This document shows, piece by piece, positions 13,328 through 23,080 of a DNA stretch of 64,000 bases. The notes below the pieces were generated by a model. That model was not told where the DNA came from. It was given only the letters and a program-made list of their open reading frames with translations, and ran no database searches. Each line of letters opens with the position of its first letter. Within the stretch, counting starts at the first letter, position 1. This DNA is from Pelomyxa schiedti (taxonomy: Eukaryota > Protista > Evosea), in assembly GCA_020536535.1 (NCBI GenBank), contig JAHLWZ010000150.1:7477-71476 (forward strand), written 5' to 3'. Made by a program: the position numbers and the translations under genes.

Positions 13328-15332
13328 ATGGGTCTCGACATTTTGTTGTTCCGAGCAGACAACGCGGACGGACAGGGGCCTGAGTCTGTAAGGGACTCTC
13401 AGCGACGTCGTTTTGCCCCCGTTGAGCTCGTCGACGAAGTAATCCGTCTCGATCAAGAGTGGAGAACCGGTATCATATCACGCGTCCTTTTTCCCATTCA
13501 ACTCTATGGGTTTTTTTTTCCCCCGTTTTTCCGTTCCTCTATGTTACCAGTTTCTTACGGGGTGTGATAGCGCGATTCAACTTGGACCAGGCCAATAAGG
13601 AGCTTGGGAGACTGAAAAAGTCCATTGGTGAAATGCAGATTGCCAAGAAGAAGGGCAAAGCTGTCTCCGCCGAGGACGAGCAAGCCGCACTCGCCAAGAA
13701 AGTTGCTCTCGAGGCCAGCCTCGAGGGTCTTGAGCACAAGGAGGAAGAAGCCAAGAACGCCGTGGATGCCAAGTTGCCTCACATTGGAAACATTGTGCAC
13801 CCTTCCGTGCCTGTCAGCGCCGATGAGGTGTGTCAAGAATATCTTTCTTCTAATTATTGTTATTATGGTGTATTGTTATGACTGGTATAAGATTTTAATG
13901 AATTGGGGGTGTCCGTTGTAAATTCTTTTCTTGTAGAAGGACAACTTGGTTTACAAGACGTGGGGCGAGCCTGTGCCCCTTGAAGGTGGACACTATCACT
14001 CTGAGCTTCTTGCTATGATTGATGGTTATGACCAAGAAAGAGGTTTGATAATTTTCGTACTGTTTTCTCCCTATTAAGTGCAGTGACGATTTTGGGTTTT
14101 GTAGAAATTTTTACTCGAGTAACTGACTCTTGATAAAGGTACAAAGGTTGGCGGCCACCGTGCATACTTCCTCAAGGGATGGGGTGTTAAGCTCAATCTT
14201 GCTCTCATCAACTACGGCATTACCTTCCTCGAATCAAAGGGCTACACACCAATGCACACACCCTTCTTCATGAAGAAAACTGTGATGGCACTTACTGCAC
14301 AGCTATCAGAGTTTGACGACCAGCTCTACAAGGTCGGAGAGGGGACTGTGAAGGATCCTGATGACTATGATGAGAAGTACCTCATTGCAACCTCAGAGCA
14401 ACCTTTGTCCGGTTTCCATCTTGGAGAGTGGATGGTACCGTCATCACTTCCCCTCAAGTACTGTGGCTACAGCACAAACTTCAGGAAGGAGGCTGGTGCT
14501 CACGGCAGGGTACGCTTTCTTTTGTTTTGTTCTCGAATTTTCCAACCATTGTTAGGATACATGGGGAATCTTCCGTGTACATCAGTTTGAGAAGATTGAG
14601 CAGTTTGTTTTGAGCAAACCAAGCGAGTCATGGGCCGTGCATGAGGAAATGCTTGCCACTGCAGAAGAATTCTACCAATCAGTACGCCGCAATTCGGCCA
14701 TTCTTTCCCTTAATATCTCGATAGCTTGGCTTCTCTTACCGAGTTGTTTCAATTGTAAGTGGTGCTCTTAACAACGCTGCCGCTAAGAAGTACGACCTTG
14801 AAGCATGGTTCCCCAAGTTCAGGGAGTTCAAAGAGCTCGTCTCTTGCTCAAATTGCACTGACTACCAAGCTCGATCACTCGAGGTATTTCTTTTTCAACT
14901 ACAAGAAAATAGCCGTTCTGAAATTTGCTTCCACAGGTGAGGTGCGGCATGAAGAAGGAGGGAGTCAAGAAGAAGGAATACGTCCACATGCTCAACAGCA
15001 CACTTTGCGCAACTGAGCGAACTCTGTGCTGCCTCCTTGAGAACTGCCAAACGCCACAAGGTATCAGAGTGCCGGCACCACTTAGACCATTCTTGGGTGG
15101 TGTGGAGATAATTCCCTACACGAAGCCGTGCCCCAAGAGGCCATCCACTGTCCCCGCTCCAACAGCAGCCGCTACTACTACAACAACCTCATCAGCAACA
15201 GCATCCACAACAACAACAGCTACTCCAGCAAGTACCCCAGTTACTACCCCAGCTGTTACCCCAGCTACTACACCAGCTGTTACCCCTGCAGCTGAGACAC
15301 CCGCCAAGCCCACAACTGGAGGAAGCTCATAA
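13328..15332 (+). CDS. SARS1: Cytosolic seryl-tRNA synthetase, multi-exon, with Thr/Pro/Ala-rich C-terminal tail
   Basis: [88 protein letters not shown]. Confidence 0.97.
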
Positions 15333-15445
15333 CACCCACAGTTCCACAAGACAATCCACTTGTTCTTTTGAAAATGAGGAAAAAAATGCACTTTACAAGC
15401 CAATTGGTTTTTTTTTACAGTACAGTGGTTTTGTGGAGTAGAATG

Positions 15446-17027
15446 TTACGTTAGGGAGAGTAGAAACTGACGAAGGTTGTCAGGGGTCGAGGCGTGCCGC
15501 CGTACTACATTTAAGTAGAGAGAGGAATACTTTACAGTTGAAATGAGGTGTGACTTGTCTTTGGCGGAGCAGTTTTGAAGAACATCCAACCACTCTTTCA
15601 CTACCTGTGGGATAGGTAAGTTCTATTAAGGGGTTTGACTGTAGTGAATGTACCCCAATATTACTGGACTGAAGATAGGGGTTCGTTGGAGAGCAACGAT
15701 CCCATAAGACCAGGGATCCTGTTAGAGCATAGGCAGCGAGATTTTCATCACAAAAGAATATCGTGGACAGACGGTGTTCTAGACTTTAGTTGACGTAAAA
15801 ATTGGTATGAAAGGAGGATTCATCGTACCAGTTAAGGGAGCCGGGATCTGGAGTTAACATGCACGCATACGAATTAGCAAGCAGAACCAATTTGTCGAGA
15901 ACTTGAAGGGGCATAAGATGTGTTATACATGATTGAAGTTCTCGGGTCATTGGATCTACAAGAAATATCACAAACAATAGTTGAGAAATAGACCTCACCA
16001 GAATTAGCAAAGAAAAAAGCCATGGAATTAATCAAAGAGGAATCCTTCTTGGAATCTTCCGGCATCGTGTCAAGTAAACGGTGATAGTAAGCTAGAGTGT
16101 TTTGTAAGTGCGGTTTGGACATCTATCGAAAGTTCAGAATATAGGGAATAAGGAACTTATACTTTGATGTTATCAAATTTTATTGCGAATTCGAGCATTT
16201 GGCAAAAGTCGAGAACACTCCAAGCAAAGGAAGAACTTGTAGGAGGAAGTGTCACAATAGAACTCACAGCAACTTTACACTTAGCATCTTGTGTGTGTTA
16301 TGGGATACATTTCAGAGAAGTATTGTACTCAATTCTTGTCCAAACTTATAATATTCCAGGAGTTCATTTATGATGGCCATTATCGAAGGCATAGCTTCTT
16401 CATGAATGCCAGCAAATTTGTATGCCTGCAGGCCTTATTTTGGTGACTGACGTTTTTGTAATGTTTATTATGTGGCTCTCAGGCTTAATAGTGTTTTGTG
16501 ACTGAAAAAAAAAAAAAGTAGTGGCACCTCCGAAATAAGAGACGCACAACCCTGTAATTGCTCTATTTTTAGTATGAATTCTCTTCCCCTGTCAAAAAAA
16601 TCTGGCACCAAGAGTCATGCACGCGTCAATAAGTTGAAACAAGTACTCACCACAGCGTTCCCATCTCAACACGGCCAATTTCCAAGAACTCTCAGCTTTC
16701 ACAGCCACACGCATCAGCACCTTTGCCAAACCTATTACATATTTATAAAAAAGAAGGTCAGAAATGATAAGAGTCCGTTCACAGCCATAACAACAAACGG
16801 TAATCAATGGTGACACAAGAAGAGTGCGAAGTACCTTCCCAAACGACCTCGTCGTTGGCCAACAGACGAAGTGACTTGCACGTCGCGGACACGTTGCGGA
16901 GCGAGACGCAGTCCAAGAACGACAGCACCAACTTGATCACGTGCTCAGGCATGCCCGAAAAGCCACACGGCCACCACCCCTCCCCGTCCGACGGAGTCGT
17001 GGTAGTTGGTGTCGCTGCGTCCCCCAT
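15446..17027 (-). CDS. F-box / CYRI (FAM49, DUF1394) fusion protein, multi-exon
   Basis: N-terminal F-box FSGMPEHVIKLVLSFLDCVSLRNVSATCKSLRLLANDEVVW splices in frame to QLQGCASLISEAY..LLEYYKFGQEL..MLEFAIKFDNIKMSKPHLQNTLAYYHRLL..MAFFFAN..LTGSLVLWDRC..LISTVKYSSLYLN, collinear with FAM49 motifs. Confidence 0.8.
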
Positions 17028-17069
17028 CACTGATCCAACAACACTAAAATCGTTCGCCGCTTCTCACTT

Positions 17070-17169
17070 NNNNNNNNNNNNNNNNNNNNNNNNNNNNNNN
17101 NNNNNNNNNNNNNNNNNNNNNNNNNNNNNNNNNNNNNNNNNNNNNNNNNNNNNNNNNNNNNNNNNNNNN
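17070..17169. other. Assembly gap (100 N)
   Basis: Run of N. Confidence 1.
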
Positions 17170-19105
17170 AACAAGGAGTTGGCCAGAGAGAACAAGGAGT
17201 TGCTGAAAAAGAACCTGGCACTGGCTAGTGAGAAAGAAGAGCTAAAAAGTTTAAATAAAACCCTTGCGACATCTCTCGACGAATTGAACAACCTGTGTAA
17301 GGTAGACTACATCTTTCACATTCTTTCGTTTTTACGTAGTTGTTTATTTTATTTTATTTTTTTAATTTTATTTTGTATTTGCAGAGTGAAAGAGACCAAA
17401 ATGCCAGGAGACTATCTCTTTGCGCAAAGAAAACCGAGGAAACTACAACAGGTTGTAGTGCATCATACTTCAGTGACAGGACAGAACAAAAAGCACGCCG
17501 ACAGTACCTTAGAACAATGAAGGAGATGGAGGAGGAAGGTCCAATTAAACTGTGGACTCAAAGCCCACTTTGGAATAAGCTTACAACTGGTATATCCGAA
17601 TTCACGGGCAATGGTGTGCATTGTGACAGTCCATAGGAGAAAGTGAGAAAAAGCATCTACAACCAGCCTTTTCTGAGTTAATCACTTCTCTTGAGAAAGG
17701 GAGCTGTGGGCTTATCCATTTACAAGATACTCATTCAACGTTGTTGCATTCCTTTCTTGTGGTTTTTTGACTGCGTTTAAAGAGGATTCAAATTGGGGAA
17801 GCATCATGTGAAGCCAGGTGCTGTAGGCTTGATGACTGCCCGGGCTCATCCTATCCCACTGGAAGTCGCTTTCTTTGTGGAGTTAAAATCAAAGAAGCTC
17901 CCTATAGAAAAGGCTGTTGGACAAGTAGTGCGATATTGTGTAATTTTGATGAAGCAATGTCCTCCCGTTTTCCGGGAACGGGTAAGGTTCTGCTCCTACT
18001 CGATATTTTTGTAACACATTGAAGGCAGTTGGGGTTGCAACAAATGGCAGGGACACACGGCTTATTGAAGTCAGTCGGGACGATATCGAAACTCAAAATT
18101 ACCAGGTACTTAACATTTAGCAACCTGTACTTTAACACTTCAAGTGCTTCAACTTTGATGAGTTCCCTTTGGCGCAACTGCTTGGTACTTTGCTGAGCCA
18201 AAACAAGGAATTCCTTCTTGGTGCAAATTCATTGGAACCCTTTGAATTCAATGGGGAAACCATCTTGCCTGAACGTCCTCTGTCGCATGGAGCAACTAGC
18301 AGAGTATTTGTAGGTGTGTACTCAATGTGTACTTTGCCCAACTTGACTGACTATATCCAGACAATTACAAGAAAGTCTGGAAAGTTGCCAGAGACGAGGC
18401 ACTTTTTCCTGTTCTGGAGAAAGAGGCTGATTTGTTACAACGGTTTTTTCGGGTGTAGTACCAGAAGTTTGTCAACCCTATTAACGCCAACATTAAAAGG
18501 AACATATTACAGGCGTACCAACTGTAACCGGGCAAGTGAGTCACGGATTTTGCATGGAAGAATGTGGCACTCTCCTGAGAGAAAACAGGTTACTTCTGCG
18601 AGGACTCAGCCATCAATATGTGGATACCCTCAAGCTAGTTGGCGCTTTGAATTATGTTCACAGAGATTTGAGACCTGCAAATGTGTGCTAAGCAAATTAT
18701 TTTGCCTTGTTCATAATAACACACCAGCTTCTTGTGTGCAATGGAAAAGCATTGATCATTGACTGGGGATTTGCTGTATGCTGTGGCATTAACGGATACC
18801 AGGGGACTATCCGCTATGCCTCCTTCAGAGTTTGGAAGCAACTATCAGCAAACCGGTTTACTGTTGGAACTCCGACTGACGTGCAACTGGCAGACGATCT
18901 CGAGTCCCTTGTTCTTTCCATTGCCGCACTAAGTGTTGCAGGTTATGACAAGACGGTGCTTGGTACCCAACTCCAGGACATTTGGACCAATGTTTGGGAT
19001 CCAATTTTCAGTCCAACAAGTGCCTGGAGCCCTCTTCTGGATGCAGCCCGAACCTGTAACTATTCTGAGCTCCACCGTCTGTTTGACGCCCTTCTTTTTC
19101 CATAG
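17170..19105 (+). CDS. Coiled-coil + PD-(D/E)XK-like domain + protein kinase (Crinkler-associated / fungal-type kinase architecture); 5' end lies in the assembly gap
   Basis: KELARENKELLKKNLAL heptads; VKPG..FFVELKSKK..AVGQVVRY..GVATNGRD; LSHGATSRVF, MEECG, VHRDLRPAN, IIDWGFA, GTIRYAS, DDLESLV. Confidence 0.75.
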
Positions 19106-20853: not shown

Positions 20854-22077
20854 TCAGTGGAGAATTCTGAACCTACCACTAATAGGGTAGTGGTCCGAGA
20901 GTTCCATTGCGGTTTTGGAGCCACCCTTGCGTGATGGAAGGCTGAAGCTTGTGTTGTCCTGAACGGCAACTTCCAGGGGCAAAATGTTTCGGACAAAGAA
21001 GTAGTCTAGCCTGTAGCTTTCGGTGCCGTGTGAGAAGAACTGCTTCAGGGAGTTCCTGCTGTCACTGGTCAGGAAGAGTTGGTTTGTTGTTGTCACTGCT
21101 ACAGTAGAGGTTGAGGGCGGAATTTCCGGCTTTATTGCAGTTGTAGTTGTGGTAGTTGCCTCACTATTTTCTGCAATGCTGGAACTTGTTTCCACTGTCG
21201 TGGTACTTGATGTGACTTCCGCACCGGTTGTTCCTCCAGTTTCTGCTGAAGGTGTACTGTGCGCCATTGGTACAGCACTTGGCGGAGAGAAGGTAAGTGG
21301 GTGAAGCATTCGAAATGCATCACGAAGACCCTTCGAGGCTAGCTGCTCACACATAATGGAGTACTGCCCAGTATAAGCGGTGTAGTCAAGGTTGAGTTCA
21401 GCAATGTTCATATCACCCATCAGAATCACCGGCTCGTTCCCGTCCGGAATCACAGACAGAACTTTCCGCATGTTCTCCTCCCTGCAGTCCAGAATCTCCC
21501 TAGCATTTGGGTTCGAGTAGCAGTCTGAGCCAACAACAGCAAATCCGGCCTGCAAATGTGTGACAATGATTCTGACACCGTCAACAACGACGCTAGAAAC
21601 GCCTTTGCAAGCAAAAGCGTCCCAGCCCGCCAGCTTCTCGAATTTCACAAACGTGCATTTGTCGAATGCCTTGGGCTTCTTGCACAAAAGCAGGATCCCG
21701 CCTCCCATAAGCGGCGAAAACGCGCTCCCGCGGAAGGCCAGCATCGAGTTGTACAGCCGCGCGACCGATCGCGCGATCGAGTCGGCCAGCGACGTGCTCC
21801 AGACCTCGCACAGGGCAACGAAATCGGCCCCCGACGACATAATTAGTCGCGAGATCGCGGCGGCGCGGTCGGCGTCGTAGTAGGCGAGATTCCGCGCGAA
21901 CGTGGCCGCGAAGGTCCCCGCGAAGAGGTGCGTGTTCAGAAACAGGAACCTCCGTATTTCGACGTCGTTGTCGTCGCCGCTGCCGCTGTCATTTCCAGGT
22001 TTTTTAGGACTGAGGAGGCTCTCGTTGGCGCAACTTGACGCTCCGAAGGATGAGCCTCCTGAAGGAGAGGCCGCCAT
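20854..22077 (-). CDS. Endonuclease/exonuclease/phosphatase family enzyme, sphingomyelinase C / neutral SMase-like; intronless
   Basis: Single ORF with FLNTHLF, VALCEVW, KGV, VTHLQA, LMGDMNI, RLDYFFV, SDHYP; Thr/Ser-rich insert before the last motifs. Confidence 0.85.
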   Translation of the reverse strand: MAASPSGGSSFGASSCANESLLSPKKPGNDSGSGDDNDVEIRRFLFLNTHLFAGTFAATFARNLAYYDADRAAAISRLIMSSGADFVALCEVWSTSLADSIARSVARLYNSMLAFRGSAFSPLMGGGILLLCKKPKAFDKCTFVKFEKLAGWDAFACKGVSSVVVDGVRIIVTHLQAGFAVVGSDCYSNPNAREILDCREENMRKVLSVIPDGNEPVILMGDMNIAELNLDYTAYTGQYSIMCEQLASKGLRDAFRMLHPLTFSPPSAVPMAHSTPSAETGGTTGAEVTSSTTTVETSSSIAENSEATTTTTTAIKPEIPPSTSTVAVTTTNQLFLTSDSRNSLKQFFSHGTESYRLDYFFVRNILPLEVAVQDNTSFSLPSRKGGSKTAMELSDHYPISGRFRILH

Positions 22078-22243
22078 TTGTTCGGTGAAGTTTTGATTTT
22101 CGTTCGAACGGAAGTTTGTGATTGTTTTATGCAAAAAATGTTCAGGTCTAGACCGAGGGGCCAAGGGGAAGTCAAATGTACAATTGGGGACTTTATTTAT
22201 CTTGCAAGTGGTGTATTGGGGTGAGGTATTGAGGGAGGGCCGG

Positions 22244-23080
22244 TTACTCTTGATACTCAAATACTAGTTTATACAGGTCTGGTTCCAGGTGAGCCAGTTG
22301 CACATGGCAGTTTCGTGCATGCCATGATGCATTCAACCCATCAATAAAGCTGTTGAGATTGGATAGTGTTGACCCGTATGAGACATGCCCGACACTGGCT
22401 CCGGTTCCGCCACCAAGAGCTCCTCCAGCAACTGTATAATATTATATTAGGGAAAAAGGAAAACCAAGACACAAAACACAGGGTGTTAAATGGTACGTAG
22501 ATGTCTGTGATCTTCTTATATTGGGTGTTTTTTGTTTTTTTGTATTGCTTTGAAGCATACGTAAAATTCCAGCAGAAAAAGGAATCCCCATTCCAAGGGT
22601 AGCTATACCCACTACCGCAGCCACTGGAGCTGCCACCAGAGTGCCCACGAGAGTGCCGTACTTTGCTCCCTGTTTTAGTACATTAACTAACGAGCCATGT
22701 AACTGCGGCTTTTTATAATACATTACCGTTGATTTGGGGTGGCACTCGTGCACAATGTGGTTTACTTTGCTGATGATGTCATTGTACTCAGCTGGCAAAA
22801 CCAAAAGGCGCAGCAACTGCGGCGGCATCGAGTTGTCAAACAGTTGCCCTGTCGTTCGACTAACCACTATTGTCTTGGTGACGACTAGTCCGGGTTGCAG
22901 CATGGACCGGTTTTCAACGGTTTTTTTTTTTTTTGTGCTTGGCCAAGTTGAAAAACATTCTTTGGCTTTTGATGGCACCAAGTCGATCAGGACTTGCAAA
23001 TGCGGTTCCCTTTCCTGTTGCATAATAGCCGCTGCGTTTTGTGGGCTGTCTTGTGGCAAGACATTTGTTGCAAGCAACAA
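22244..23080 (-). CDS. Hypothetical protein with hydrophobic hairpin, weakly ERF4/Golgin-A7-like
   Basis: FDNSMPPQLLRLLVLPAEYNDIISKVN, Gly/Ala-rich hydrophobic stretch, last exon LNSFIDGLNASWHARNC. Confidence 0.4.

Follow-up and report, generated by a model that had tools for sequence, protein, structure and literature searches.

In a window of 64,000 nucleotides (nt) of DNA from the anaerobic amoeba Pelomyxa schiedti (contig JAHLWZ010000150.1, assembly GCA_020536535.1; all positions below are those of this window), we found an intact gene model, Pelo_1722, in which one reading frame leads from a predicted N-terminal F-box through a short helical linker into a CYRI/FAM49 (DUF1394) domain that has diverged strongly. 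The product has already been deposited as a hypothetical protein, and we found no paper that describes the pairing. The explanation that we favor, and to which we give about an even chance when it is taken as a whole, is (i) that Pelo_1722 is one fused gene; (ii) that its product would act as a substrate receptor of a Skp1-Cul1-F-box (SCF) ubiquitin ligase; and (iii) that the CYRI fold would be the target-binding module of this receptor, recruiting a Rac-family GTPase.

CYRI is a local brake on Rac-Scar/WAVE signaling that acts by competition and needs a lipid anchor. In Pelo_1722, the F-box and linker appear to stand in for the first ~50 CYRI residues, including the N-terminal helix and the myristoylated start; the F-box would dock on Skp1-Cul1, and the sequestration of active Rac would thereby be turned into Rac ubiquitination. 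If this is true, a lipid anchor has been swapped for a ubiquitin-ligase handle, which would be a different route to switching off active Rac, and the protein would offer a natural template for a degrader selective for the GTP-bound state. This significance is weakened because Rac-contact residues are changed and no orthologue was found.

Gene model and domains of Pelo_1722

Three-frame reading of positions 15200-17300, combined with the location of splice motifs, yielded nine exons on the minus strand, running from the ATG at 17027-17025 to the TAA at 15448-15446 and comprising 369 codons plus the stop (1110 nt of coding sequence). The span that an initial annotation of this DNA had assigned to the gene, 15446-17027, is exactly this coding span. 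All eight introns are of the GT-AG type (103, 49, 102, 41, 40, 43, 45 and 49 nt for introns 1 to 8) and have a GC content of 0.33-0.47, as compared with 0.46 for the coding sequence. Their number is consistent with the 7.4 introns per gene reported for the P. schiedti genome, in which 98% of introns are GT-AG (PMC8887013).

The hand-built model is identical, exon by exon, to GenBank entry KAH3766401.1 ("hypothetical protein Pelo_1722 [Pelomyxa schiedti]", 369 residues): each exon peptide stands at its expected offset in the deposited protein, and five split codons give rise to G65, D92, N149, D232 and C274. For the deposited models, Augustus predictions were passed through PASA and EVM, which drew on the authors' transcriptome data (PMC8887013). 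Hand reading and the authors' pipeline thus represent two independent routes to the same model, in agreement at all junctions. Full-length searches were run with KAH3766401.1, while the hand model itself was searched exon by exon. The features of the gene and of its 5' flank are as follows.

15446..17027, minus strand: whole coding span of Pelo_1722 (hand model and KAH3766401.1)
16835..17027, minus strand: exon 1, residues 1-64 and the first base of the G65 codon; T/P-rich start MGDAATPTTTTPSDGEG, predicted F-box at residues 23-64 (Pfam, FBXW7 alignment, GC content at third codon positions, GC3)
16732..16834, minus strand: intron 1, 103 nt, GT...AG, with a pyrimidine-rich tract ahead of the acceptor; split codon GGT, G65
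16651..16731, minus strand: exon 2, residues 65-92 (part), predicted helical linker behind the F-box; in-frame ATG of M71 at 16714-16712
16602..16650, minus strand: intron 2, 49 nt, GTGAGT...CAG, at the F-box/CYRI junction; split codon GAT, D92
16528..16601, minus strand: exon 3, residues 92-116, where CYRI homology begins (Pfam from 99, PDB from 105); no in-frame ATG
16329..16425, minus strand: exon 4, residues 117-149, CYRI domain
16163..16287, minus strand: exon 5, residues 149-190, CYRI domain, C-terminal end LEFAIKFDNIK
15999..16122, minus strand: exon 6, residues 191-232, Rac-contact helix region (alignment to CYRI-B; contacts from PMC7955166), with M191, P194 (16113-16111), Q197, N198, A201, H204 (16083-16081), R205 (16080-16078), N222, A225, F226 and A229
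15829..15955, minus strand: exon 7, residues 232-274, CYRI domain
15654..15783, minus strand: exon 8, residues 274-317, CYRI C-terminal (Ratchet) part
15446..15604, minus strand: exon 9, residues 318-369 and the TAA stop
17064..17066, minus strand: in-frame TGA between the assembly gap and the ATG (window sequence)
17070..17169, no strand: 100-N gap in the assembly, 43 nt upstream of the ATG (window sequence)

Exon 1 alone matches both Pfam F-box-like (PF12937; E 3.5e-8, 33.5 bits, cut-off 24.3) and Pfam F-box (PF00646; E 5.3e-8, 32.9 bits, cut-off 20.5). The same result was obtained with residues 1-98, which match F-box models only; the full-length deposited protein matches the F-box models as well, and a below-cut-off F-box_4 alignment (24.2 bits) extends through exon 2, covering residues 23-92. 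Positions kept relative to the FBXW7 F-box are P27, VLSFL (34-38), L42, TC (48-49), R53, LA (55-56), D58 and W63, and the leucine of the LP in the F-box motif is a methionine in Pelo_1722; alignments to the F-boxes of SKP2 and beta-TrCP also retain the usual core positions. By these matches, residues 23-64 are a canonical F-box, and docking on Skp1-Cul1 is predicted from this assignment.

The downstream part of the spliced protein matches Pfam CYRIA-B_Rac1-bd (PF07159, DUF1394) with an E-value of 9.1e-25 and 87.9 bits (cut-off 23.1), residues 99-349 aligning with profile positions 31-292 of 301; detection of DUF1394 was a check that the initial annotation had named. When residues 92-369 were submitted alone, the CYRI profile was recovered at E 4e-25 and no second Pfam family appeared at E<=10. 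Among solved structures, the CYRI-B chains 7AJL, 7AJK and 6YJJ match best (E 3e-17); the alignment pairs residues 105-349 with CYRI-B 54-311. About a quarter of the aligned positions are identical by our own count, and there are short deletions behind the YYRR helix relative to CYRI-B. On this evidence, a strongly diverged CYRI/FAM49 domain is located at about residues 99-349.

Only exons 1 and 6, apart from a hit to DUF7842, gave Pfam matches when exons were searched singly, because single exons are too short and the CYRI part is strongly diverged. Exon 6, the only exon that matches CYRI by itself, does so below threshold (E 0.0018, profile 129-174); exon 9 has a sub-threshold match to the unrelated DUF7842 (E 0.037), and the other single exons (2-5, 7 and 8) have no Pfam match. 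The sole PDB match of exon 6, to a designed repeat, was judged spurious. The increase from 18 bits for the best single CYRI exon to 88 bits for the spliced protein, in a collinear match, supports the splicing of exons 3-9. The CYRI-like peptide quoted in the initial annotation is present, and intron 5 divides its coding sequence (FDNIK before the junction, MSKPH after it).

Pelo_1722 has the same DUF1394 domain as CYRI-A and CYRI-B (FAM49A/B), including the Dictyostelium CYRI. Collinearity with CYRI, which had been proposed along the full length, extends from CYRI-B 54 to 311; it does not reach the first ~50 CYRI-B residues. The core FD..KM..P..QN..YY.R is kept, with equivalents of CYRI-B P150, Q153, N154, R161, N185 and A192. 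However, Pelo_1722 differs from the CYRIs in the replacement of R160 by histidine, of S157 by alanine and of R64 by serine, in addition to its low identity and its deletions. Furthermore, CYRI-B residues 1-53 (profile 1-30) have no counterpart, and residues 1-98 of Pelo_1722, which there consist of F-box and linker, take the place of the N-terminal helix and myristoylated start. A CYRI-type N-terminus, in which a Gly2 myristoylation site precedes the N-terminal helix, was not found. The protein starts with MG (MGDAATP); the PROSITE myristoylation pattern disfavors an aspartic acid after the glycine and a proline at the sixth position.

The DUF1394 fold family is also common to Pelo_1722 and CYFIP1/2 (PIR121), the Scar/WAVE subunit whose DUF1394 forms the Rac 'A site'. 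CYFIP is a roughly 1250-residue scaffold inside a five-protein complex, whereas Pelo_1722 matches the CYRI Pfam model only and has no FragX_IP part. CYFIP R190, which corresponds to CYRI-B R161 and to R205 of Pelo_1722, is the one reported CYFIP Rac-binding residue conserved with CYRI (PMC7955166).

The F-box/CYRI junction

As had been proposed in the initial annotation, the F-box is spliced in frame to the CYRI exons through two GT-AG introns (16834-16732 and 16650-16602), and its reading of the architecture as an N-terminal F-box followed by CYRI/DUF1394 in one frame agrees with the Pfam and PDB statistics and with the independent deposited model. Its functional proposal, a ubiquitin-ligase substrate receptor for Rac or the WAVE pathway, is a prediction built on this architecture. 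Introns 1 and 2 have good splice sites and maintain the frame, and exon 3, which sits 49 nt past exon 2, has no in-frame ATG; we count both observations for a single gene. We consider it highly probable that the F-box-CYRI fusion is real.

It is distinctly unlikely, in our judgment, that the fusion is instead a gene-model artefact or one of several products, with a CYRI-like protein starting at M71 and the F-box exon forming a separate unit, possibly truncated by the gap. The observations that count for such a split, and against a fused gene, are the following. The in-frame ATG of M71 (16714-16712), in exon 2 and 21 codons ahead of the DFFDRG motif, could start a protein of 299 residues without an F-box, which is close to normal CYRI length. 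Because of the assembly gap ahead of the F-box ATG, neither the 5' end of the gene nor its promoter is defined; the assembly was made from whole-genome-amplified single cells and scaffolded with P_RNA_scaffolder using RNA read pairs (PMC8887013), and the gap may be an RNA-based join. GC3 drops sharply, from 0.80 in the F-box exon 1 (16836-17027), near the top of the distribution in the window, to 0.58 in exon 2 and 0.32-0.54 in exons 3-9 (15449-16599). Finally, a protein look-up returned no transcript-derived copy, and the sequence is on one contig only.

Against the split, exon 1 left unspliced would run into a stop after 19 more codons, and the resulting 83-residue F-box-only peptide makes little sense; intron 1 has a good donor and a good acceptor and preserves the frame. 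The in-frame TGA at 17066-17064 favors 17027 as the initiation site, barring an upstream exon that is joined to the AG at 17045-17044; with this stop ahead of the ATG, nothing obvious marks exon 1 as the end of a gene lying upstream, and the upstream neighbor in the deposited annotation is on the opposite strand. Since GC3 ranges from 0.88 to 0.37 within a single uninterrupted open reading frame (ORF) of 468 codons nearby, the composition step is not diagnostic, and we rejected it as proof of a chimera; it could be a 5' gradient or the mark of a recently added exon.

Rac-contact residues and candidate targets

To the extent that the fused gene is real, its product probably acts as an SCF receptor, and for such a receptor we put the chance of a Rac-type GTPase as target at a little under even. 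For the control of Rac by an SCF there is a precedent, SCF(FBXL19), which PMC8165220 cites along with HACE1; Pelo_1722 would resemble these ligases in limiting Rac signaling. FBXL19 has leucine-rich repeats, and HACE1 combines a HECT ligase with ankyrin repeats. Cul3-RhoBTB is also a ubiquitin ligase that acts on Rho/Rac GTPases. None of the three is known to use a CYRI/DUF1394 fold as its receptor.

The likeliest target of Pelo_1722 would be a GTP-bound Rac-family GTPase, bound through a partly kept switch-I interface (P194, Q197, N198, R205, N222 and A229). To define this interface, the CYRI-B:Rac1 contacts (Yelland et al. 2021, PMC7955166) were transferred via the CYRI-B structure alignment and the residues were checked in the deposited protein. 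In the lines below, the contact in CYRI-B (PMC7955166 throughout) is followed by the Pelo_1722 residue.

CYRI-B R64, hydrogen bond to N26: S115, changed
CYRI-B Q68, shared DUF1394 interface: K119, changed
CYRI-B M147, main-chain hydrogen bond to N52: M191, kept
CYRI-B P150, near Rac1 without direct contact: P194, kept
CYRI-B Q153, hydrogen bond to S41: Q197, kept
CYRI-B N154, shared DUF1394 interface: N198, kept
CYRI-B S157, main-chain hydrogen bond to N39, with S157A lowering binding in pull-downs: A201, changed
CYRI-B R160, salt bridge to Rac1 D38 and hydrogen bond to F37 (crystal structure): H204, changed
CYRI-B R161, beside switch I and conserved with CYFIP R190: R205, kept
CYRI-B N185, shared DUF1394 interface: N222, kept
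CYRI-B S188, shared DUF1394 interface: A225, changed
CYRI-B L189, shared DUF1394 interface: F226, similar
CYRI-B A192, shared DUF1394 interface: A229, kept

At the nine positions of the shared DUF1394 interface (Q68, N154, S157, R160, R161, N185, S188, L189 and A192), Pelo_1722 is identical at four, similar at one and changed at four. The residue assignments of the initial annotation (P150 as P194, R160 replaced by H204, R161 as R205) were correct. The change to histidine that it had noted is present; however, it is not a minor one, as it is R160, and not R161, that forms the salt bridge to Rac1 D38 and the hydrogen bond to F37.

Several of these results speak against Rac as the target. The substitution of H204 for R160 takes away the salt bridge to D38, A201 equals the mutation that reduces binding, and S115 and K119 replace R64 and Q68. 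Binding to Rac1 Q61L persists in CYRI-B that lacks the N-terminal helix (PMC7955166), so that losing the N-terminal part of CYRI need not abolish binding; however, this binding to Rac1 is weak, with a dissociation constant (Kd) of 25 µM, and in Pelo_1722 the lipid anchor is missing as well. A single-sequence AlphaFold2 model of Pelo_1722 was unusable (predicted local distance difference test score, pLDDT, 41). Given the changes at R160, S157 and R64, we judge Rac binding by Pelo_1722 to be plausible but weakened, as far as can be predicted from the alignment.

We also weighed a second kind of target. CYRI homo- and heterodimers use the same face as Rac1 binding (PMC7955166), which makes another DUF1394 protein a second candidate: Pelo_1722 would still be a real fusion and an SCF receptor, but its CYRI fold would no longer read Rac and would instead recruit a canonical CYRI or the CYFIP/PIR121 of Scar/WAVE through the dimer interface, or else an unrelated target. 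Consistent with this, R160, S157 and R64, which contact Rac directly, are all substituted, the dimer contact R161-A192 is kept as R205 and A229, and the domain as a whole is very diverged. However, the dimer contacts I168 and N169 fall in an alignment gap, R165 is replaced by T209, and the Rac face still has Q153, N154, R161, N185 and A192. We regard a target other than Rac as unlikely, although worth weighing.

It is also conceivable, but improbable, that the F-box does not serve substrate delivery at all: auto-ubiquitination by SCF would make the CYRI protein short-lived, as a self-limiting Rac buffer, or the F-box would be a mere tether to Skp1. Turnover by the SCF to which they belong is known for many F-box proteins, and there are Skp1-F-box pairs that work outside SCF; both facts count for this possibility, and the weak affinity of CYRI for Rac fits a buffer better than a degradation receptor. 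On the other hand, the loss of the membrane anchor speaks against the usual role as a local buffer, and own turnover and substrate delivery would look the same in sequence.

In its most specific form, the explanation that we favor would make Pelo_1722 an SCF receptor that reads the GTP-bound state of a Rac-family GTPase by means of a CYRI/DUF1394 fold, active Rac being degraded and not sequestered at the membrane. We advance this form tentatively and with more doubt than confidence, and no more firmly the suggestion that such a state-selective Rac degrader would arise by the addition of an F-box exon to a CYRI gene.

Relatives, literature and neighboring genes

Conservation of the fusion was not shown, since no orthologue emerged from word, exon 6 or metagenome searches, and this too counts against a maintained F-box-CYRI receptor. 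A word search with the exon 1 protein gave no candidate; with the whole protein, Pelo_1722 itself was the only match among 3342 candidates, and with residues 92-369 at E<=10 it was again alone, among 660 candidates. These searches require shared 5-residue words and, by our own estimate, probably catch relatives above ~40% identity, so that canonical CYRIs would be missed. A large protein search with exon 6 at E<=0.001 likewise recovered only Pelo_1722, at residues 191-231, the 41-residue query having little power, and a scan of metagenome loci gave 69 pattern matches, none of which was confirmed. There is no second F-box or CYRI copy in the window; a weak match to exon 1 at 21575-21682 was rejected, as it lies antisense to a long minus-strand ORF.

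The lack of relatives in the searches that were run, the strong divergence of the CYRI domain and the absence of a transcript-derived copy on record would also fit a decaying, lineage-specific duplicate without maintained function. Such a fate is highly improbable in our view: no break interrupts the frame in its 369 codons and nine exons, all eight introns have canonical splice-site pairs, and each of the two domains still has its conserved core motifs.

In a language-model feature search of the ESM Atlas, no cluster combined CYRI and F-box, and FBXO47-like clusters only were returned. FBXO47, in which an F-box is followed by an all-helical domain (ARM_FBXO47), has the same layout as Pelo_1722, and its clusters were the nearest, at 0.93 for the whole protein and 0.87 for residues 92-369, values in a range that we treat as a lead only. 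Residues 92-369 have no Pfam match to ARM_FBXO47 (PF24467) at E<=10, and homology of the CYRI part to the helical region of FBXO47 is likewise no more than a lead.

Our literature searches found no paper that pairs DUF1394 with an F-box, or P. schiedti with an F-box; those on CYRI or FAM49 with an F-box gave gene lists and reviews only, none describing the architecture, and those on FBXO47 with CYFIP gave nothing relevant. The statement in the initial annotation that this architecture is not known thus holds insofar as no paper describing it was found, but not for the databases, as the protein is in GenBank and both of its Pfam domains have been precomputed.

On the 5' side of Pelo_1722, an open frame on the plus strand at 17173-17301, with a coiled-coil reading (NKELARENKELLKKNLALASEKEELKSLNKTLATSLDELNNLCK), emerges from the assembly gap and stops at a GT. 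No deposited gene includes it; the annotated neighbor begins at 17517. The frame may represent a 5' exon that the annotation of this neighbor missed, or the reason for the joining of the two contigs by RNA read pairs. The neighbor itself (17517-19105, plus strand) encodes a deposited protein of 425 residues, whose record lists no Pfam family; a Pfam search with its two long ORF pieces at E<=0.1 gave only a chance-level match to DUF6419.

On the 3' side, a seryl-tRNA synthetase gene (13328-15332, plus strand; Seryl_tRNA_N and tRNA-synt_2b in the deposited record) is convergent with the F-box-CYRI gene, and its product ends in a Thr/Ala/Pro-rich tail of ~70 residues, an unusual feature for a seryl-tRNA synthetase. 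The uninterrupted 468-codon ORF mentioned above (20854-22260, minus strand), which by eye resembles a protein of the endonuclease/exonuclease/phosphatase type (sphingomyelinase-like), contains a Ser/Thr-rich insert and is free of introns, which is unusual in this intron-rich genome.

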